64,000 nucleotides of DNA from Corallochytrium limacisporum Hawaii (GCA_002811645.1 PDIP01000017.1:186001-250000); one strand, 5' to 3'. Numbered from the stretch's first letter, positions 43,405 to 57,324 are shown. Notes: a model not told the origin generated them from the sequence alone. Made by a program: numbers and translations.

Positions 43405-46400
43405 ATGAAATCTGTCCCGCTGTGGTTGGACAAGATCCAAGACCGAGAGGGGACTTCCCAACCGGTACACTGCGTGGCTTTCGAGCCTGGTGGTGACGCG
43501 CTGCTTGCTGCAGCGGGAAACCGCGTATTTGTTTACAGTGGGAGCGAAGGAAATCTGATAGAAACCTTGAAGCGTCATGAGACCAGTGTGTATGCCTTGG
43601 CATGGAGCTATACAGGAAACTACTTTGCCAGCGGCAGCGCAGATGGCCAAGTGTTGGTCTGGAGCCCAACTCAGATGAAAGTAGTTATGAAATTCAGGCA
43701 CAATGATGCTGTTCAACACTTAGCGTTTGATCCGACAACGAATTTGTTGGCGTCAGGAGCGGTTATCGACTTCCGCTTGTGGAAGGACGACCAGAAGAGT
43801 TCCTCTCGACACAAAACCGATGCTCGTATCTGCTCGATAGCATGGAGCTTCGACGGACAGTACTTGGCCTTTGGCCTGTTCAATGGCAAGATTAGCATTC
43901 GGGGGTCGGATGGTGTAGAGCGTGTGAAGCTGGTGCACGGCCAGCGCCCAGTATGGACTCTCAGCTGGATGCCATACGGGGAGGTGTACAAGTTGGAAGT
44001 GTTGGTGGCGGGAGACTGGTCAAATATTCTGAAATTTTATCAACCATCGGGAAGGATTCTGCATGGAGTGGAACTCGAAGACTCCATTTCATCACTTGAA
44101 TTCTACAACCATGGAGAATTTTTCGTAGGTGGAACAACGAAAGGAAAATGCCAACTGTACAAAAAGGATGGCACGAAATTGGCTACTATTGGTTCCACAG
44201 ACGGATGGGTGCTGAATAATAGTATTGCCAACGAACGAAATCTGGTAGCATTTGGTTCGACTGAAGGCTACGTTGGTGTGTATCAGATCGGGTTCAATAC
44301 TGTCCACGGTTTATGGAATGATCGATATGCATACAGGGAGGGCCTAACCGATGTCATTGTGCACGACTTGGCAAAGGACACCAAAGCTCGTATCCAATGC
44401 CGCGACATGGTGCACAAAATTTCCAAGTACCAGAATCGATTAGCTATCCAGTTGTCTGACAGGATCTTAATTTGTCGACCTGATATTGACAACCGCCAAG
44501 GTCTCAAGTATGTTGTGAAGCAAAGCCTTAAGTTGAGGGAGACTGTAGCATGCAATCTTTTGGTGGTATTGTCGCAAAATATTGTACTTTGTATTGAAAA
44601 CCGTCTGGTCAATTATGACTTTGAGGGGAAACAGATTTGCGAATGGAATCTTCAATCCGTAGTACGTTACATCAAGGCTATTCCGGGTCCACCAAGTCAC
44701 GAAGGTCTCTTGGTTGGTCTCAAGAACGGGTTAGTCCTAAAGGTCTTCATTGACAACCCATATCCATCGATAGTAACTCGGATTGACTCTGTTATTCGCT
44801 GTCTAGACATGAATATCAGCAAGACAAAGGTCGCCATTATAGGTGATACAGCTGAGCTGATTGTCTACGATTTAGTCAAAAAGAAGGTAGTATACAAGGC
44901 CGGGGGTGCAACAAGCGTGGCCTGGAATACGCAGTTCCACGATATGCTATGCTACAGTGGACCTAAGGGTCTCTATATCAAGACTGCAGACTTTCCAGTT
45001 CATCTGCAGAAGTATTCGGGATTTGTTGTAGGCTTCCAGGCGAGCAAAGCCTTTTGTCTAACGAAGTACACTGTAACTGCTGTGGACATCCCTCAGTCAC
45101 AGTCTATGTACGGATATTTGGGTGCGAACGACTTTGAGAAGGCATATGAGGTTGCATGCCTAGGGGTCACGATTTCCGACTGGAACGCACTCGGCCACAA
45201 GGCTATCCTTGCAATGAATTTTGATATTGCACGAAAGGCTTTCATTCGGTTGAAGGACACAAAATGGCTTACTTTTATTGACGAATATGGTCATGAAGAG
45301 GAAGGCGTTGTTCGCGGCTACTACTTTGCTTTTACCCGAGATTTTGTGAAGGCAAAGGATGCATTCACCACGGCCGGGTACCGCGGCCTCTATGATGAAG
45401 TTGAGCAGGATCTTAATGAGGATGTTGCAATCAAGGCGGCAAAAGCAGTTTCGAAGGAGCCGAGACCAGTGTCCAAGTCTACGGAGCAAGGTAGCGAAGT
45501 TGCTCGTCCTCCTCCAGAAGATGTCACAAACAGCATGGAAGCGAACGACAGCGGTGGAAGTAAGCTGCTACCCATGACAAAGGTTGTGGACCCAGTGAAG
45601 AAGAGAATCATTGTTCCTTTGGAAGATGTAGAATCTATGGATATTGAAGAGCTCTTGCAGGGGGACGTCATGGGGGCAATTCAAAGGCTCGGAGAAACTG
45701 GGGATGTCAAAGGACTAGTCGAATTGATGCGCCGACTGCCAATCGACAAGTTGCAGGCTTTCCAGGAATGCGGGCTTTGGTTCGCATACCACGGTAAAGT
45801 TCAGAATCAGTTGGAAGCTTTCCAGAAGTGTCGGGATATTCCAGGCATTGTGCACTCCAACGCCCTCCTTGGAAAGCCCAGAGAGGCACGTGCCGTGGTC
45901 ATGGACTATCATGATCGGTTTCAAGACCACCAACAGCGGCAAATCTACCTCAGTGCAGAGGCTAGTGATACGAAGGCTTGTTTGGCTATCGCCGCCAGCC
46001 AAATGGGCCAGCTCACGTGCTGTCGAACGGTTTGCAGCCTCATTGAGCGCAAAATTACGATGCGGAGGTATGCCGATGGATCGTACCTGTGCTGGTTGCT
46101 GGCACAGATGATGAAGATAGGTTCCGTTTCTTTCATTGCCACTCCGCTTGGAGGTGCTGGTCAAGAAGACCAATCAGCAGATTTCTTCCTGATGCTCGCT
46201 GAGGTGTATGCAGCATACCAAGTTGTACTACAATTCATGGAGCAGCCATTCACTGACTTCACGCCATTGCAACTGATGCATGCAGCACGATTCCTGAAAA
46301 CTAAATGTCTCCGAAACACACCAACAGGTATCTCACAATCAGCCATCATGTTCACTTTGGCACAGAATGCCAGGATTAACGGAGGCTTTGGTACCGCGAA

Positions 46401-46968
46401 GACTGCGTTTGCCCAGTTGCAGACCTTGCGGGTCCCTTCACACATCCTCGTTGTAGCGTCTCTAGCTACTGCCCACTCTCATGGGGATCCGAGTGAGGAT
46501 GCTCTGGATGTCCTGCCGGTTTGCCCACGATGCCAACGGGATAACCCCGTGCTCACAGACTGTGGCAATCGTTGCATCCATTGTGCTAACGGGTTTATTC
46601 ACTGTCTGCTGACATTCACCATCTTGAATGTGGTTGAATGTGTCACAACCGGTGTATCGGTAGCAGAAGCTGAGAAACTACTTGCTGCTGGAGGTTCCTC
46701 CGACGAAGGCATTCGAGAGCTGCTGGATGTGGCATTCAAATCATCATCCTGGGATGCAGAAGTACCGTCCTCAGTGTTGCGCTCTCTAACTCTCGCGGAC
46801 GTGTTCATCGTAGAAGAAAGCTCACATGGTTTGCGTTATATGGTCAGCTGTGACCCCCAGGAAGCACTCCAGATGTGTCCGTCATGCCACAAATTGTTTT
46901 TATTGGGTCCTTTCGAACGGCAGCGGGTCGAGAAGGGATACTGCGCACATTGTCGCACGTTCCTCTGA
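43405..46968 (+). CDS. IFT122: Intraflagellar transport protein 122 (IFT-A core)
   Basis: N-terminal WD40 repeats (AAAGNRVFVY, FASGSAD), FNTVHGLWNDRYAYRE.LTDVIV, CNLLVV, GLLVGLKNG.V.KVFIDN, AYEVACLGVT.SDW, ARKAFIRLKD, and C-terminal CxxC zinc ribbons. Confidence 0.95.
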   Translation: MKSVPLWLDKIQDREGTSQPVHCVAFEPGGDALLAAAGNRVFVYSGSEGNLIETLKRHETSVYALAWSYTGNYFASGSADGQVLVWSPTQMKVVMKFRHNDAVQHLAFDPTTNLLASGAVIDFRLWKDDQKSSSRHKTDARICSIAWSFDGQYLAFGLFNGKISIRGSDGVERVKLVHGQRPVWTLSWMPYGEVYKLEVLVAGDWSNILKFYQPSGRILHGVELEDSISSLEFYNHGEFFVGGTTKGKCQLYKKDGTKLATIGSTDGWVLNNSIANERNLVAFGSTEGYVGVYQIGFNTVHGLWNDRYAYREGLTDVIVHDLAKDTKARIQCRDMVHKISKYQNRLAIQLSDRILICRPDIDNRQGLKYVVKQSLKLRETVACNLLVVLSQNIVLCIENRLVNYDFEGKQICEWNLQSVVRYIKAIPGPPSHEGLLVGLKNGLVLKVFIDNPYPSIVTRIDSVIRCLDMNISKTKVAIIGDTAELIVYDLVKKKVVYKAGGATSVAWNTQFHDMLCYSGPKGLYIKTADFPVHLQKYSGFVVGFQASKAFCLTKYTVTAVDIPQSQSMYGYLGANDFEKAYEVACLGVTISDWNALGHKAILAMNFDIARKAFIRLKDTKWLTFIDEYGHEEEGVVRGYYFAFTRDFVKAKDAFTTAGYRGLYDEVEQDLNEDVAIKAAKAVSKEPRPVSKSTEQGSEVARPPPEDVTNSMEANDSGGSKLLPMTKVVDPVKKRIIVPLEDVESMDIEELLQGDVMGAIQRLGETGDVKGLVELMRRLPIDKLQAFQECGLWFAYHGKVQNQLEAFQKCRDIPGIVHSNALLGKPREARAVVMDYHDRFQDHQQRQIYLSAEASDTKACLAIAASQMGQLTCCRTVCSLIERKITMRRYADGSYLCWLLAQMMKIGSVSFIATPLGGAGQEDQSADFFLMLAEVYAAYQVVLQFMEQPFTDFTPLQLMHAARFLKTKCLRNTPTGISQSAIMFTLAQNARINGGFGTAKTAFAQLQTLRVPSHILVVASLATAHSHGDPSEDALDVLPVCPRCQRDNPVLTDCGNRCIHCANGFIHCLLTFTILNVVECVTTGVSVAEAEKLLAAGGSSDEGIRELLDVAFKSSSWDAEVPSSVLRSLTLADVFIVEESSHGLRYMVSCDPQEALQMCPSCHKLFLLGPFERQRVEKGYCAHCRTFL

Positions 46969-49596: not shown

Positions 49597-49888
49597 NNNN
49601 NNNNNNNNNNNNNNNNNNNNNNNNNNNNNNNNNNNNNNNNNNNNNNNNNNNNNNNNNNNNNNNNNNNNNNNNNNNNNNNNNNNNNNNNNNNNNNNNNNNN
49701 NNNNNNNNNNNNNNNNNNNNNNNNNNNNNNNNNNNNNNNNNNNNNNNNNNNNNNNNNNNNNNNNNNNNNNNNNNNNNNNNNNNNNNNNNNNNNNNNNNNN
49801 NNNNNNNNNNNNNNNNNNNNNNNNNNNNNNNNNNNNNNNNNNNNNNNNNNNNNNNNNNNNNNNNNNNNNNNNNNNNNNNNNNNNNNNN
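49597..49888. other. Assembly gap (N run)
   Basis: 292 N upstream of the 50332 gene. Confidence 1.
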
Positions 49889-50331
49889 TTCATTTTCTTT
49901 TTCTTACTTGCCTTCTTTTTCGTGAACGGTGACCGGCGCTGGGCCCGCTGCGACGAAGCGCTCTTCCAAAAAATCAAGCATTATCGCGAGCGAGCAACAG
50001 CGCAGTGAGATGACAACCACCAACCACTGAGGCCCCCCCCGGGCGGGGGAGGGAGGGGGACTTTGCTGAAGAGGATAAGTGGCCTTCCCAACGATGTAGT
50101 GCACATCCCGCACAGTAGTACGTTCTGACCAACAGTATGCTTCATTGCTAGAATACGAAAGGTATACAGAAGATCTACAGTCCCAAACAATCAATGAGTA
50201 GAACTAAACTCTAAAACCGGGACCGCGGAAACAAATACTATTACGAATCAAGAAGAGCCAGTATATTCCATTTCATTCGCAATGACAAGTTCCTGATTGT
50301 GTTCGGAGGAGGTTTGAAATATTAGTTTAAC

Positions 50332-53300
50332 ATGCCTGAAATCTGGAATGGATTTTACATGACGGGCAAGCCGTCAAAGAAGGACTTGCAAACCATGCTT
50401 GATAATGTCCGCAAGTCGGCTACATTGGGCACACACAGCTTGGAAGTCTTCCCCGAAGGTATAGACGTCGAGGAAGTAGCTCTGGACTCTGAGACTGTTC
50501 GCAACGCTCTGCAACACATTACTAACCTGTCAAACAAATTCAACAAAAGTCACGCAGTTCTCTTCCGAGGATACCCAAGTAGAGTCAGGTCACGAGCCTT
50601 TGGAGACTTCATGCGAAACTGTGTGACCTCGCATTACCAGAGCAAGAACCGGGGATTTGGTGATAAGTTGAATTCTGCAATCACCTTCTTGGAGCACTTA
50701 TCTGGTATCGACTCGGACAAGATTTTGACTACATATGCATCTTGGAGATTGTACCTGGAGGAGAATGAGGCAGGTGCGGGCACTGAAATTCTCCATGGTG
50801 CCCAGTTCTACTTCGCAGTTGTGAGCGGGTCTCTGTTCTCATATACGAGTGGCATCATCCCTGATATCCTCTGGGCATTTCTGTATGGATGCCAAGACAG
50901 GGGAATCCGGTCGGCCTTCCAATTGGATTTGTTGTGTGAGCCAGACCCTGAAAAGAAGCAAGCTGGCATTGAGGTCTGGGGTTCTTTCTTAGACCTTGCA
51001 CAGCAGCTGGGTATTGATGAGCAGATCATGGTCCGCACTCAAAGGATTTTTGCGGTGATCCTCCACACCCTCTTCCTGGAATTCGATGCCGATGACCATG
51101 GCAACGCGGTTGTAATGGGCCACATGGACGTGCTTTCACGACTTATGGACGTCAATCCATCGGACTTGAATCGGGCCTTGACAAGAGTTGAAATTGATTT
51201 GGGTGATGTTGTGGAAAATGAACCCATGAAGTTAGATGTAGCAATGCAGAATCAGCTTCAGTTTGTTCAGATTCTTTTCCATGCAATGTATTTTGTTCTT
51301 GTTGAAGAAGTCAATCAGAGCCTTGCGACGGATATGTCTCAGAGCGTGGACTACCACACCGTCGATATTATCAACTGCAGAGAGGCCCAGTTGGAGAATG
51401 AATTTGGTGGCTGGAACGACGCTGCTGGTGAAGTTCTGTCTGTGTTCCTTCAGAACTACGTCATTGAAAACCTTGATGAAATGTCAGCTGGAATCCCAGA
51501 CCGTGAGGTCTTGCGAGCCAGGGATGCTGCTCGCTTCTGGTATAATACTCCCGACAGTGTTCTGAGAATCACAGGTGAGTGCTTCGAGAGACACATGTTC
51601 TCACAAAAGGCATTCAGTCAGACTTTCCGCGAAGCAAATGACGACAAAGAATATGACAGCATGGTGTTTAGTATGAACGGTACTCACCTCGATGTATCTC
51701 GGGACGGGCATCTCAGGAAATACGAGACGAAAGAATTCATCAAAGACAACCAAATGTTTGATCTGGAAAAAGCAAAGGGGGCCCTTCTGAAGGTAGCCAG
51801 GCATCCTGAGCTCCTGTGGATTCCGCAGACCTTCACCTGTGAGTTTGGACTGATTTCTAATCTTGAACCTGCGAACGACAGGGGAATGTCAGCTCGGGCC
51901 GAATCCTCTGCGGGAAATTTGATGCGTCTAATGGCCGCCATCAAATTGCACCACCGATCCTTCGATCCGGCAATATTCTACTTCTTCCGCAGGGGAACGG
52001 TACCATTGGACATCCAAGCGCGTCACCTCGGAGTTGATCTTGCAATCTACTGTGAGCACAATGTCAAGGTTGAGATTTCAACGGAATACTTGTCCAAAAT
52101 GATTGGCGACCAGGCCGCAGTCAAAGCGGTGTTCAAGCAGATCGGCATCAGGTACGAACCAAGTGGATACGGAGTATTGATTCCTCCAATCGCTCTTCGT
52201 ATGATCGAGGCTAGAAAACCGGCTCCTAAAATGGCACCATCTGTAAAGCCCACTGCAGCAGAAGAGAACGGTAAATACACAGAGAAGGAAGGCTCAGCTC
52301 TTCCTGAAGCACAGGCTACGTACGGCAACCTAGAAACTGGAGTTGCCAATCTTTCTGTGAAGGACGCGCCTGGGCAGGACGGAAATGTGTACGGAAATAT
52401 GGACATTATCAACAACGGATCCCCGAAAGCAGTCACGCACGCCGCACCTGTGCAGTCTGGGGCAGGTCCTGTATATGGCAATATTGACGACACGCGAGGC
52501 GGTGCCCCCAGTGAGCCCGCGTCCGGGCAAGCTCCGTCTCCTCCCTCGGGACCAGTGTATGGCAATGTTGACCCAGCGAAAGCTGCTGTGGCTGCAGCTG
52601 CTGTGGCCGCGGGGTCTTGCAGTAGATTGACCCAGAATGTACAGCCAGTCTATGGTAACATGGGACAAGTGCAGAAGCCTGGTCCATTGCAGGCCAATCA
52701 AAATGGCCCAATGTACGGAAATCTAGACTCGCCGGCTGCAGGCTCTGCCGCTGGTGCGGGGAATCACGGACGAGGCTCAATGCATGACACGTACATGACC
52801 CCTGACGAAATTGATCGCAATACCCCTCCTGAAATTGGAATCCAACCAGTGGTACAGACTCCACCTGAGGAGCACCGAAAGCGGCCGTCTGAGAACTCAA
52901 CTGTCTCCGGTGGCACCCACCGACCGCGCATGCCGACCTTGCGTCTTACTATGCGGTCCAATGCCAGTGGTGAGGCCTCGAGCCATAGTTCGTCTCCACG
53001 AATAGGCCGGCGACACATGTCAGTCTCTTCGGCAGCCAGTGGACGCCCTGATTTTGGCAGCTTTGACATACGCCAGATCTACCCAAACATGGAGCGAGGT
53101 GAAGCTGAACGGGTCCTTGCGGAATACCCAAACGGAATTTGCTTGATTCGGTCCAAGCCGGGACAGGATCGCAAGTATCCATTGAGCTACAAACTTTCTG
53201 AGGGTGTGGTACGACACTTTATTGTCCATCGTGATCCCCGTTCTGACACTCCGTGGTATATGCATGAGACCGCCCAGTTTCGAGCACTTGGAGATCTCCT

Positions 53301-53772
53301 AACATTCTACACAGAGACTCCCCTGGATGATGACAACCATGTCATCCACGGCTATGCTTGGCAGACGAGGCCTTGGCGTGCACCGGATCACAGGCACACG
53401 GTCTCGAACACAAACATTGCGACTACGGCACGTACCCCCAGCCTTGGCAGTGGTGCAGCATCTGTGAACAGCGACATACCTCCAAATGAAAGAGTTCGCC
53501 GCCTTGACGCGGACATTGCCTCCTTGCGTAAGAGCATCGATCTGCAGCGCGTGCGAGAGAATCTGCATCGCGAGAAGCAGGCCAAGCTCGGCTTCTTGCA
53601 ACGTAAAGAGAAAAGGCAACTGCAGGCAATCATCGATGAAGCCTGCGAAATGCAATTGCAGTACAGGAATCGCATTGCCAGCATGGAGAAAGAGAAGTAT
53701 CGCCTGACTGCGGGTAACCGCGGACAGGGAAGTTCAATGCAGGACATGACCAATTTCCGCCCGTTCCAGTAA
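50332..53772 (+). CDS. Degenerate myosin-motor-like domain + YGN tyrosine repeats + SH2 domain + coiled coil (putative phosphotyrosine adaptor)
   Basis: aa ~60-625 follow the myosin head segment order but lack the catalytic motifs. Six YGN motifs lie at aa 664-795. SH2-like segment MERGEAERVL...GICLIRSK...YPLSYK...VRHFIV...FRALGDLLTFY at ~53075-53370. C-terminal heptads. Confidence 0.75.
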   Translation: MPEIWNGFYMTGKPSKKDLQTMLDNVRKSATLGTHSLEVFPEGIDVEEVALDSETVRNALQHITNLSNKFNKSHAVLFRGYPSRVRSRAFGDFMRNCVTSHYQSKNRGFGDKLNSAITFLEHLSGIDSDKILTTYASWRLYLEENEAGAGTEILHGAQFYFAVVSGSLFSYTSGIIPDILWAFLYGCQDRGIRSAFQLDLLCEPDPEKKQAGIEVWGSFLDLAQQLGIDEQIMVRTQRIFAVILHTLFLEFDADDHGNAVVMGHMDVLSRLMDVNPSDLNRALTRVEIDLGDVVENEPMKLDVAMQNQLQFVQILFHAMYFVLVEEVNQSLATDMSQSVDYHTVDIINCREAQLENEFGGWNDAAGEVLSVFLQNYVIENLDEMSAGIPDREVLRARDAARFWYNTPDSVLRITGECFERHMFSQKAFSQTFREANDDKEYDSMVFSMNGTHLDVSRDGHLRKYETKEFIKDNQMFDLEKAKGALLKVARHPELLWIPQTFTCEFGLISNLEPANDRGMSARAESSAGNLMRLMAAIKLHHRSFDPAIFYFFRRGTVPLDIQARHLGVDLAIYCEHNVKVEISTEYLSKMIGDQAAVKAVFKQIGIRYEPSGYGVLIPPIALRMIEARKPAPKMAPSVKPTAAEENGKYTEKEGSALPEAQATYGNLETGVANLSVKDAPGQDGNVYGNMDIINNGSPKAVTHAAPVQSGAGPVYGNIDDTRGGAPSEPASGQAPSPPSGPVYGNVDPAKAAVAAAAVAAGSCSRLTQNVQPVYGNMGQVQKPGPLQANQNGPMYGNLDSPAAGSAAGAGNHGRGSMHDTYMTPDEIDRNTPPEIGIQPVVQTPPEEHRKRPSENSTVSGGTHRPRMPTLRLTMRSNASGEASSHSSSPRIGRRHMSVSSAASGRPDFGSFDIRQIYPNMERGEAERVLAEYPNGICLIRSKPGQDRKYPLSYKLSEGVVRHFIVHRDPRSDTPWYMHETAQFRALGDLLTFYTETPLDDDNHVIHGYAWQTRPWRAPDHRHTVSNTNIATTARTPSLGSGAASVNSDIPPNERVRRLDADIASLRKSIDLQRVRENLHREKQAKLGFLQRKEKRQLQAIIDEACEMQLQYRNRIASMEKEKYRLTAGNRGQGSSMQDMTNFRPFQ

Positions 53773-53883
53773 TTTGCACACATGAGTTGAGAAAAGTGAG
53801 GGACACTTGCTTTAAAGAATTAGAAATCCTACACTTTATTCTAACAAAGGTATGTTATTGAGCTGACTTAGTTTTCTTGTCAC

Positions 53884-56800
53884 TCAAGGACGGTAGCACA
53901 TCTGTGGCTGCAAGGTATGCGGCTCATTGAGCTTGCGGTAGGCAAGGTGCACCCAACGGCATGCAAGTGGCCTCGTGTACCTGGGATCGATAACTTCTTC
54001 CACGTTGAACGCAGCGGCAGCCCGCAGCGGGTTGCGGACAGGTTCGAATTGTTCCAACAGGGCATCCTTAACAGCCTTGGGATCCTCTGCGGCTTTCAGT
54101 TTCGCTTTGTATGCAGCCTCAATGCCACCTTCAAGGGGGAGGGACCCCCAGTCACCGGACGGCCAGGCCACACGGTAGTTTGGATCACCCCGATCAATGA
54201 ATGCTGCCCCAGCTACACCGAATGCACGCCGGACAATGGTTGTGAAGAAGGGTACGGTTGCCGTGTACAGTGATGCCATTGTTGTGGCGCCTTCACGAAT
54301 GACACCGCTGACCTCAGCCTCAAGGCCCACCGCAAATCCTGGCTGGTCCACAAGGTTCAAAATCGGTAAATGGAAAGTCTGACACAGGTCCACATGGCGC
54401 CTGACCTTCCGTGCAGCATTAGAGTCGAGCGCACCTCCCAAATGCTCCGGATTCTGTGCCAAAACGCCCACAGAGTACCCATCGAGTCGAGCCAAGCCCA
54501 CTATCATACTGCTTCCCCATTCCTTGCCAATTTCGAAGAATGATTCACGATCAACAACGGAATCGATAATCTTCCTCATGTCGAATGGCGAGCCACGTGT
54601 CTTTGGCACAATAGAAGCCAAGCCATCATCCGTGCGTTTCGGATCGTCTTTCTGCGCATCAGCAAGATTTCGTGGCGCTAATTCGTAGGCATTCGTCGGC
54701 AAATAGCTGAGGAATTTCCGCACATGCTTAAACGCTTCTTCCTCGCTTTCAACTACCTGGTCTACAGATCCGTTGGTACCAGAGATGCTCCAGCCACCCA
54801 GTTGCTCCTTGGTAAGGCTCTGATGGGTTGCGTACTCTACCACAGGCGGACCAGCCACAAACAGCTGGCTCAAACCGCGCACCATGACACTAAAATGAGT
54901 CATCATCGCCCGGGCAGCGCCTAGTCCAACCACAGGGCCGAGGAGTAGACCACACACGGGGGCGACGTTGAGGATGTCCACTTGCGCCCTCCAGCCCACC
55001 AGTGGCGGTGCGTAGGAATAACCTGCATCCAGCATGGTAGTAACTGATCCACCTCCCGAACTGCCGTCAAGCAAGCGTACCATGGGAATGCGGAAGTCCA
55101 GAGCCAACTTCTCCATTTGAACCTGCTTCAACCAGATAGCACCGTCGGCATGGCCGCCGCGTATGGTAAAGTCATCTGCACCAACCATGACCTCTCGGCC
55201 ATGGATTCTACCCTGTCCGCCAATGTAGTTAGCAGGGTGTGATTCGATCTCGTCTCGGCCCATATTGGCATACACTGTCTTGCCGGCAATGCTACCGATC
55301 TCGTAAAATGAGCCCTTGTCGAGGAGCAAGGCAATTCGGCTGCGGGGATCCAGTTTACCAGCGCTATGCTGGCGCTGCAGACCCTTCTCACCGCCCATTT
55401 CGAGGGCACGTGCGCGGCGGCGATGAAGTTCATCGATGGCATCTTTCCATAAGTTGTCTGCGCTCGGGGCAATTTCTGGATGCTCATAGCTTTCCTTGAT
55501 GTGGTCGTACAGAACTTGCAGTCGTTTGTTGGCTTGGGATGCTGACGTGTCAGGCTCCAAAATTAGAATTGGTTCGCCCTTTTTCACTAGCGACCCAGCA
55601 GATATCACGACCGAAGCTACCCTACCCTCCTCCATTGCACGGATGCTGTGCTCCATTTTCATGACATTGATGTTGCCAACAACAGTAGAGCGGGACACCG
55701 ATTCTCCCTTCTTAACATTGAGCTGACTAAGCATGCCACTCATCGGTGCTCGCACAGCAAGTGCACCATCAGCAGCAGCTCCTTGATCTTGTAAGGCAGA
55801 TGGATCAGAACCACCGACAATCTCCTCCAGCAGGGTCAAGCGTCCATCGTTGGTGAGTACAGCACGTCGCTGTGATAGAGCTTCTCCAGGAGCCTCTGGC
55901 TGTCGGGGCGCCAGCTGCGGTCGGATGGATCGGTCAAAATGCTCGTAGATGCGCTCGCCATCTGTTGTGGTCACAGTGTCCTGCACTACTGTTGGGTCTT
56001 GGAGAACTGCGAGGATCATGTCACGGTTTGTGGAGATCGGACCCACGTGAAGTTCACGCAGAGCTGCAGCCATCCGTTGCAGACCATCTGCCCGTGTACT
56101 TCCTCGGCAAATGACCTTCAAGAGCAGTCGATCATAGAATGGAGGCACTTCCTGGCCAAGCACTACACCAGAGTCGATGCGAGTAAAGGGTCTCAATGGG
56201 TAGTGAAGGCGGTTGATTCCAAGGCTCTCCGTATGACTCTCCATGTTGATTCGGGCCTGAACAGCCATGGTGCCACGATCTGGTGTTTTAACATCATGTA
56301 GGCCCAATTCCCGCAGAGTCGCACCTTGACCGATAAGCAACTGATTTTGCACAATATCAACTCCAGAGAATTCTTCAGTTACTGTATGCTCCACCTGGAC
56401 GCGTGGATTGACTTCAAGGAAGTAGTATTCTCCACTAGTTACATCAACCAGAAATTCTACAGTTCCAGCGGATCGATAATCTGCTGCCCTTGCGATTGCG
56501 ATGGCAGACTCCCAGAGCTTCTCACGGATCTTCAAAGGTACACCATCGGCGGGAGCAAACTCCAGAAATTTTTGACGCTGAAGCTGCAAACTGCAGTCCC
56601 GATCCCATAAATGAATCACATCACCTGTTTGATCCGCAAGCACCTGAACTTCGACATGTTTTGCCCGTGCGATATACTGTTCAACAAAAACACTAGGATC
56701 CCCACTGCTGGCCACACCTTCCGCTGAACACTTCTGGAACACGGGCTCAAGTGCATCAGAGCTTTCCACGACTCCAATACCTTTGCCACCTCCACCGTTC

Positions 56801-57324
56801 ACCGCTTTCAACAAGAATGGATAGCTGACTACTCCTGATGCCTCCTGTACGATGGACTGCAGTTCTGGGAACGTCCTTGCGCTCTGCCCGCTGGCCCAAG
56901 GAACGGGGATCCCCAGAGTTTGTGCAACGGCCTTGGCCTGCAACTTGTCACCCAGCATGGACAAGGTCCGGGCCTCCGGTCCAATAAAGACGACTCCAGC
57001 ATCTAGACATGCTTGTGCCAACTTAGGGTCCTCGCTGAGGAATCCGTATCCTGGGTGGAGCGCATCTGCACCCGCTTGCTTGACTATGCTCATGATGCCT
57101 TGAAGGTTCAAATATGCAGAGCTCGGATGAGGCATGGTTTGACCAGGGGGTGGCGGTGGTGTTGGAAGCTCAAAGCTTTGCGTTGCTTCATACCTGTGCG
57201 GTGATTGACTGTCCTCTTTACCGTAGACTGCTATGGTACGAATGCCCAGTTCTTGAGCTGCGCGAATAATCCGAAGGGCAATCTCCCCTCGATTTGCGAC
57301 TAGCAGTTTCGTGATCTTTGGCAT
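53884..57324 (-). CDS. Single-chain biotin-dependent acyl-CoA carboxylase (BC-BCCP-CT), long-chain acyl-CoA carboxylase-like architecture
   Basis: BC motifs ANRGEIA, HPGYGFLSE, GGGGKG, RDCS, EVNPRVQVEH; BCCP APMSG...VMKME; CT motifs DDFTIRGG, LFVAGPPVV, VDQPGF, RRAFGVAG, EEVIDPRYTR. Confidence 0.9.
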   Translation of the reverse strand: MPKITKLLVANRGEIALRIIRAAQELGIRTIAVYGKEDSQSPHRYEATQSFELPTPPPPPGQTMPHPSSAYLNLQGIMSIVKQAGADALHPGYGFLSEDPKLAQACLDAGVVFIGPEARTLSMLGDKLQAKAVAQTLGIPVPWASGQSARTFPELQSIVQEASGVVSYPFLLKAVNGGGGKGIGVVESSDALEPVFQKCSAEGVASSGDPSVFVEQYIARAKHVEVQVLADQTGDVIHLWDRDCSLQLQRQKFLEFAPADGVPLKIREKLWESAIAIARAADYRSAGTVEFLVDVTSGEYYFLEVNPRVQVEHTVTEEFSGVDIVQNQLLIGQGATLRELGLHDVKTPDRGTMAVQARINMESHTESLGINRLHYPLRPFTRIDSGVVLGQEVPPFYDRLLLKVICRGSTRADGLQRMAAALRELHVGPISTNRDMILAVLQDPTVVQDTVTTTDGERIYEHFDRSIRPQLAPRQPEAPGEALSQRRAVLTNDGRLTLLEEIVGGSDPSALQDQGAAADGALAVRAPMSGMLSQLNVKKGESVSRSTVVGNINVMKMEHSIRAMEEGRVASVVISAGSLVKKGEPILILEPDTSASQANKRLQVLYDHIKESYEHPEIAPSADNLWKDAIDELHRRRARALEMGGEKGLQRQHSAGKLDPRSRIALLLDKGSFYEIGSIAGKTVYANMGRDEIESHPANYIGGQGRIHGREVMVGADDFTIRGGHADGAIWLKQVQMEKLALDFRIPMVRLLDGSSGGGSVTTMLDAGYSYAPPLVGWRAQVDILNVAPVCGLLLGPVVGLGAARAMMTHFSVMVRGLSQLFVAGPPVVEYATHQSLTKEQLGGWSISGTNGSVDQVVESEEEAFKHVRKFLSYLPTNAYELAPRNLADAQKDDPKRTDDGLASIVPKTRGSPFDMRKIIDSVVDRESFFEIGKEWGSSMIVGLARLDGYSVGVLAQNPEHLGGALDSNAARKVRRHVDLCQTFHLPILNLVDQPGFAVGLEAEVSGVIREGATTMASLYTATVPFFTTIVRRAFGVAGAAFIDRGDPNYRVAWPSGDWGSLPLEGGIEAAYKAKLKAAEDPKAVKDALLEQFEPVRNPLRAAAAFNVEEVIDPRYTRPLACRWVHLAYRKLNEPHTLQPQMCYRP

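Follow-up and report, generated by a model that had tools for sequence, protein, structure and literature searches.

The window analysed here is a stretch of 64,000 nucleotides from the genome of Corallochytrium limacisporum Hawaii (GCA_002811645.1 PDIP01000017.1:186001-250000). On its plus strand, an open reading frame (ORF) at positions 50332-53772 encodes a protein of 1146 residues in a single exon. The predicted protein consists of a degenerate myosin-head-like region, a linker with six Tyr-Gly-Asn motifs, an SH2 domain, and a long C-terminal helix; all of these features lie on the plus strand. Together they somewhat favor a reading of the protein as a motor-dead phosphotyrosine (pTyr)/Grb2 scaffold. 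An original prediction, made from the sequence alone, had proposed this ORF and described its product as derived from myosin, dead as an ATPase, and equipped with a tyrosine array and an SH2 domain; the analysis supports both. It had also placed the peptides GYPSRVRS, DIINCRE, and CLIRSK correctly, at residues 80, 345, and 937 (positions 50569, 51364, and 53140).

The evidence shows a genuine, intact gene that is expressed and kept under purifying selection. An in-frame TAG at 50323-50325, three codons upstream of the ORF, means that the frame cannot begin further upstream without splicing. In each of two probable RNA runs, one gap-free, unspliced contig at 50224-53781 (plus-strand coordinates) spans the entire ORF; such contigs define neither the strand nor the exact ends of the transcript. 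Comparison of one RNA run with the ORF reveals 10 strain differences, 8 of which are synonymous (against an expected fraction of 0.33 for transitions; p=0.003), and it is this synonymous excess that indicates purifying selection. All four differences within the head are synonymous, and both replacements fall outside the folded domains. The orphan status and extreme divergence of the protein, described below, would also be expected if the gene were a pseudogene in decay or an error of assembly, but the open 3.4-kb frame, the full-length RNA contigs in two runs, and the synonymous excess have already largely refuted this explanation, and its probability is negligible. The assembly comprises 24.1 Mb in 286 contigs with long intronless open frames, in agreement with the published Corallochytrium limacisporum genome (24.1 Mb, with 0.0 introns per coding kb; PMC5560861). 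Over the stretch compared, the myosin I of this genome is identical to a Corallochytrium contig in the data file of PMC3942036.

The head-like region spans residues 1-630 (50332-52221) and is delimited by language-model features, a colinear alignment, and an alignment-seeded structural model. Its homology to myosin is firm for residues 224-339 (51001-51348), which correspond to the upper 50-kDa subdomain, the CM-loop hairpin, and helix O. This core matches the Pfam family PF00063 (Myosin_head) with an E-value of 7.3e-6 and 25 bits, under the curated cut-off of 33.3. It also matches a profile of the nine intact myosins of the same genome (E 5e-11) and, in hhalign, reaches 93.7% (E 1.9e-7), so that the significant profile match to a myosin head proposed as a check was obtained. 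When segments were compared with shuffled sequences using a profile aligner, the core scored a z of ~14, residues 340-633 a marginal 1.9-2.9, and residues 1-223 and the converter segment alone no better than shuffles (z -0.6 to 1.5). The claim that residues 60-625 reproduce the myosin head in order is thus borne out as to order, since the global alignment to myosins is colinear and without large gaps, but statistical support is confined to residues 224-339 and is marginal or absent elsewhere.

Indirect lines of evidence extend beyond the core. The ten best language-model feature matches of residues 1-630 are all myosin motor clusters, the top one at 0.92 with 175 shared features. The order of helices and strands in a single-sequence model resembles the pattern of Dictyostelium Myo1E (PMC5583752), a qualitative likeness seen in a model of low confidence. 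In the alignment-seeded model, confidence is limited to residues 231-330, with a predicted local distance difference test score (pLDDT) of 83-97 over residues 231-320. It superposes on myosins over residues ~157-540 with a Z of ~16, which gives no independent support because the model was built from myosins. Taken together, the entire region of residues 1-630 is probably a degenerate myosin head and not a fragment of one. If instead only the 50-kDa part (~residues 160-540) derived from myosin, the N-terminal 220 residues would be unrelated and there would be no degenerate P-loop at all. Residues 1-223 do score no better than shuffles and lie outside the structural superposition, but their length and helix pattern fit the myosin layout (PMC5583752), and TM-based Atlas alignments of the seeded model cover residues 5-590; a partial origin therefore seems quite improbable.

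The head has lost the motifs by which myosins use ATP. A Walker A motif ([AG]x4GK[ST]) is absent from all 1146 residues, as is the SSR of switch I (NxxSSRFG), whereas the nine intact myosins of this genome all retain the P-loop, switch I, and switch II. The segment GYPSRVRS (50569-50592) occupies the expected P-loop position by colinearity only; it lies between two predicted helices and contains two arginines and one serine. Its designation as the P-loop is therefore plausible by position but lacks statistical support, as its score is not above those of shuffles. Switch I, originally described as unrecognizable, can be proposed at NEAGAG (residues 145-150, 50764-50781), yet this too depends on colinearity and has no statistical support. 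Switch II is the better placed motif: DIINCRE (51364-51384), standing for DIxGFE, begins five residues after the firm core, which anchors its register and confirms the proposed position. It keeps the switch II aspartate, has lost the glycine, and has no glutamate in register. An IQ lever arm, likewise predicted to be missing, is represented by neither a canonical IQ pattern nor a Pfam match.

Since Walker A and SSR are absent from the whole protein and the anchored switch II lacks its glycine, the loss of ATPase activity holds regardless of the uncertain parts of the alignment, and the predicted head almost certainly does not hydrolyse ATP. A non-canonical nucleotide site or a slow ATPase, with an arginine at the P-loop position replacing the lysine, would draw on the two arginines and serine found there and on the retained switch II aspartate. 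The glycine-rich loop, the SSR of switch I, and the glycine of switch II are all gone, however, and Drosophila myosin-18, whose changes are far milder, does not bind ATP (PMC3122231), which makes residual activity very improbable.

The tyrosine array (52321-52725) consists of six Y-G-N-[LMIV] motifs at residues 664, 687, 715, 743, 774, and 795, spaced 21-31 residues apart in a linker rich in Ala, Gly, Pro, and Ser. The linker has 272 residues and 8 tyrosines, 6 of which fall within the motifs. The tyrosine repeats noted after the motor in the original prediction can thus be made more specific, as Grb2-type pY-x-N sites in a kinase-substrate-like context. The SH2 domain of Grb2 recognizes the consensus pY-X-N-X, and PI3K p85 recognizes pY-X-X-M (PMC3787023). 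All six sites fit the former, with an invariant Asn at +2, and two of them also fit YxxM. Each site has the context V/T/M-Y-G-N-hydrophobic, and V-Y-G-x-hydrophobic matches Src substrate peptides such as I-Y-G-x-F (PMC10065799), save for the acidic residues. Four of the copies are still similar at the DNA level and therefore arose by duplication rather than by independent events; the motif has been retained despite drift in their spacers and synonymous codons. None of 100,000 linker shuffles reached six YxN sites, a result that overstates the independence of the motifs because they originated in part by internal duplication.

The array may serve purposes other than Grb2 recruitment. Its sites could be ligands of the protein's own SH2 domain, in autoinhibition or self-assembly, or of another reader, or they could be unphosphorylated low-complexity repeats. 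The SH2 domain and the array do share one chain, two sites are also YxxM, and an unrelated low-complexity tail likewise has GGYGN-type repeats. The own SH2 domain, however, carries His where Grb2 has its specificity Trp, few other tyrosines occur in the linker, Asn at +2 is constant in every copy, and no p85-like protein occurs among the SH2 genes scored in the genome, which are a lower bound on the total. Alternatives of this kind are unlikely. In a genome scan for paired YGN codons, the array and one other in-frame case were found among those read, the latter in the tail of an ANTH/AP180-like gene. This gene (L062:1374-3101, minus strand; assigned by eye) encodes a Gln/Gly-rich tail that contains GGYGN repeats and many NPF motifs.

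The SH2 domain (residues 914-1008, 53071-53355) is identified by Pfam PF00017 and its pocket residues. It was missed by whole-protein Pfam scans, and the isolated segment scores 29.2 bits against a cut-off of 21 (E 1e-6). The pocket keeps Arg beta-B5 (R940, the phosphotyrosine-binding arginine of CLIRSK, as predicted), Arg alpha-A2 (R922), and His beta-D4 (H962). At the positions of the phosphate-contacting Grb2 residues Ser88, Ser90, and Ser96 it has Lys, Gly, and Pro; the C-terminal SH2 domain of PLC-gamma1 also has basic residues at these serine positions, so binding is still plausible. From these residues, the domain probably binds pTyr. The SH2 domain closest to it within the genome is that of Nck (26.6 bits vs 18.7 for the next), a weak hint.

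The C-terminal helix (residues ~1052-1125, 53485-53706) was defined by heptad count as a long helix of ~75 residues that may form a coiled coil or a helical hairpin, and it matched no Pfam family. In its best register, 59% of a/d positions are hydrophobic, and a glycine lies midway along the helix. A long helix with a moderate heptad signal is thus present where a coiled coil had been predicted, and from its sequence it may be a hairpin rather than a dimerizing coil. Homology of the SH2-helix end to the iSH2 region of PI3K p85 was also considered; with a feature score of 0.82 alone and no Pfam match, it was rejected as unproven.

The genome encodes potential partners for such an array. The Grb2 orthologue (L050:1547-2218, minus strand) is an SH3-SH2-SH3 protein of 224 residues that keeps FLVRDS, VQHFK, and the specificity tryptophan matching human Trp121. 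The genome also encodes a Src-like SH3-SH2-kinase, Nck, an SHP2-like phosphatase, PLC-gamma, RasGAP, and STAT, and it contains 13 RasGEF-domain matches. A further candidate adaptor is a protein of 327 residues (L051:2096-3076, minus strand) that matches PH weakly and ends in an SH2 domain.

The loss of ATP-using motifs, the six docking sites, and the SH2 domain together make the protein probably a signaling scaffold rather than a motor. A Corallochytrium myosin gene would thus have lost its motor chemistry and been kept as a phosphotyrosine scaffold. It is reasonably likely that a Src-like or receptor tyrosine kinase would phosphorylate the array, whose sites would recruit several Grb2 molecules, and that their SH3 domains would bring in RasGEFs or other proline-rich effectors. 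The protein's own SH2 domain could anchor it to a receptor or kinase that is phosphorylated, or fold back on its own sites. Dimerization through the C-terminal helix is conceivable, though we would not presume it. By analogy with myosin-18 and the chitin-synthase heads, there is an even chance that the head holds the complex on F-actin without requiring ATP.

The head may also have lost actin binding and become a structural or protein-binding module, in which case the protein would be a pTyr adaptor not directly connected to actin. The extreme divergence of the protein, the only marginally myosin-like lower 50-kDa region, and the existence of myosins with reduced or missing actin-binding sequence (PMC5583752) all speak for such a loss. 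In contrast, the CM-loop hairpin is modeled with pLDDT >90, the helix-loop-helix region keeps its hydrophobic residues in register, and known dead heads still bind actin (PMC3122231, PMC4425547); a loss of actin binding is accordingly fairly unlikely. The full chain of proposed events including actin tethering is itself rather doubtful. In a further form of the reading, the head would anchor a LAT-like multivalent Grb2 platform to actin without ATP, with phosphotyrosine-Grb2-Ras clusters assembled there; this form is tentative and unlikely as it stands.

Several further points weigh against the scaffold reading. Its functional evidence comes from sequence, and no orthologue was found in which the motifs could be compared between species. 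Acidic residues upstream, as in classical Src sites, are missing, and the +1 Gly differs from the higher-affinity Grb2 form pY-(L/V)-N-(V/P) (PMC3787023). YGN repeats can arise otherwise, as the tail of the ANTH/AP180-like gene illustrates. As for the head, single-sequence AlphaFold modeling is uninformative (pLDDT 36, no fold match), and the alignment-seeded model, built from myosins, has a mean pLDDT of 53. The best-conserved stretch of the head is also the one that survives in both dead chitin-synthase heads of this genome, so conservation of the core alone is no proof of an actin interface.

No relatives of the protein were recovered. Searches with the head region and with the tail region returned only the protein itself. 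A library of 1.84 billion representatives gave no orthologue, only one weak Vav-like SH2 match and one low-complexity match. Metagenome contigs and viral contigs held no homologue besides the protein itself, and searches of its own genome found no paralogue. The two word-index searches among these scored 8000 candidates from proteins of 0.55-1.75 times the length, a scope that excludes fragments and longer fusions. The protein is not mentioned in the portions consulted of two surveys covering Corallochytrium (PMC3942036, PMC4342544), and its peptides were not found in the part searched of a 2014 myosin data file.

In a tree with classes I, II, V, VI, VII, X, XV, and XVII, the protein forms a branch of 4-5 substitutions per site (median 0.7-0.8), and its placement is unsupported (33/53). 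The tree thus yields no class assignment. The core leans weakly to class I (25% identity), and its best PDB match is Myo1c (E 0.007). Origin from a chitin-synthase head was rejected, with no phmmer match, 14-16% identity in the core, and no tree support. Elsewhere in the genome, a myosin that groups with class V sequences (L047:1591-6402, plus strand) carries a long extension at its N terminus and lacks a DIL domain.

The surroundings of the gene include a run of N at 49597-49888, an assembly gap or masked stretch ~440 bases upstream in the promoter region. Convergent with the ORF, its end 111 bases away, lies a gene for a single-chain biotin carboxylase-BCCP-carboxyltransferase (53884-57324, minus strand). 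Further upstream, an intact single-exon gene (43405-46968, plus strand) encodes IFT122; we know of no description of a flagellated stage in Corallochytrium. Compared with positions 49900-53900, one marine and one coral-reef metagenome contain short, near-identical pieces of this gene, which places Corallochytrium itself or a very close strain in both samples.

If correct, the actin-anchored form of the scaffold reading would place such a Grb2 platform in a lineage that branches before choanoflagellates and filastereans. With the scaffold reading, a concrete candidate substrate and scaffold would be added to the small phosphotyrosine toolkit of this early-branching holozoan, in which writers and readers have been catalogued and targets mostly have not. 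Profile cut-offs miss genes of this kind, as both the head and the SH2 domain fell under detection in a whole-protein Pfam scan. The weight of the finding is limited because the protein is so far an orphan of a single species.

Non-functional P-loops are known among myosins in general (PMC5583752). Drosophila myosin-18 neither binds nor hydrolyses ATP and is a proposed actin tether (PMC3122231), and in this respect it resembles the Corallochytrium head. Myosin-18 is, however, a recognizable conserved class with a PDZ domain and a long coiled-coil tail, whereas the Corallochytrium head is far more diverged and is joined to a tyrosine array and an SH2 domain. Pfam scans found neither a PDZ domain nor a long myosin-II-like coiled-coil tail in the protein, and its helix is short by comparison. 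A TH1 tail, as in myosin I, likewise gave no Pfam match.

The class XVII heads of the fungal chitin synthases CsmA, CsmB, and Mcs1 retain actin binding with motor activity dispensable or absent (PMC4425547). One myosin-head chitin synthase is mentioned for Corallochytrium in the part of PMC3942036 consulted; two are found in this genome (L048:1869-7016 and L049:2135-6928, both minus strand), and their heads likewise lack Walker A and SSR. With the head described here, the genome thus holds three motor-dead myosin heads. Unlike class XVII, the Corallochytrium protein has no chitin synthase domain or membrane part in Pfam scans and no specific similarity to the local copies.

Myosins with a C-terminal SH2 domain form a class III-like group in choanoflagellates and filastereans that is reported as Filozoa-specific in the consulted part of PMC3942036, a distribution that excludes Corallochytrium. 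They share with this protein a myosin head, a C-terminal SH2 domain, a unicellular holozoan host, and a tie to tyrosine-kinase signaling; that part of the survey describes neither a dead motor nor a YxN array for them. If the head were a derived class III-like/SH2 myosin, the fusion of myosin and SH2 would date to the holozoan ancestor.

In Myo16/NYAP3, a Src-family kinase phosphorylates tyrosines of the disordered tail, which recruits an SH2 protein (PMC7464383). It thus offers a precedent for a tyrosine-phosphorylated myosin tail as adaptor, phosphorylation being predicted from motifs in the present case. Myo16 differs in its two YxxM sites for PI3K p85, its ankyrin repeats, the lack of an SH2 domain of its own, its ATP-dependent actin binding, and its restriction to animals; the Corallochytrium protein has neither ankyrin repeats, with no ankyrin or further Pfam match, nor the NYAP homology motif, and its six sites are all YxN, the two that also read YxxM included.

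The adaptors LAT, NTAL, FRS2, and Gab carry several pYxN sites in a disordered linker and recruit Grb2 multivalently. They are anchored by a membrane helix, a lipid, a PTB domain, or a PH domain, whereas the candidate anchor here is a dead myosin head, and there is no sequence homology.

The protein resembles a blend of these known systems and belongs to none of them. Dead myosins, SH2 myosins, and a tyrosine-phosphorylated myosin adaptor are each known, and no report of their combination was found; what is new in the form originally proposed as undescribed is therefore the combination and not the principle. As far as we could find, it would be the first pseudo-motor coupled to a multi-site Grb2 array and an SH2 domain, and it would stand beside myosin-18 and the chitin-synthase heads as a third case in which a motor independently became a pseudo-motor.

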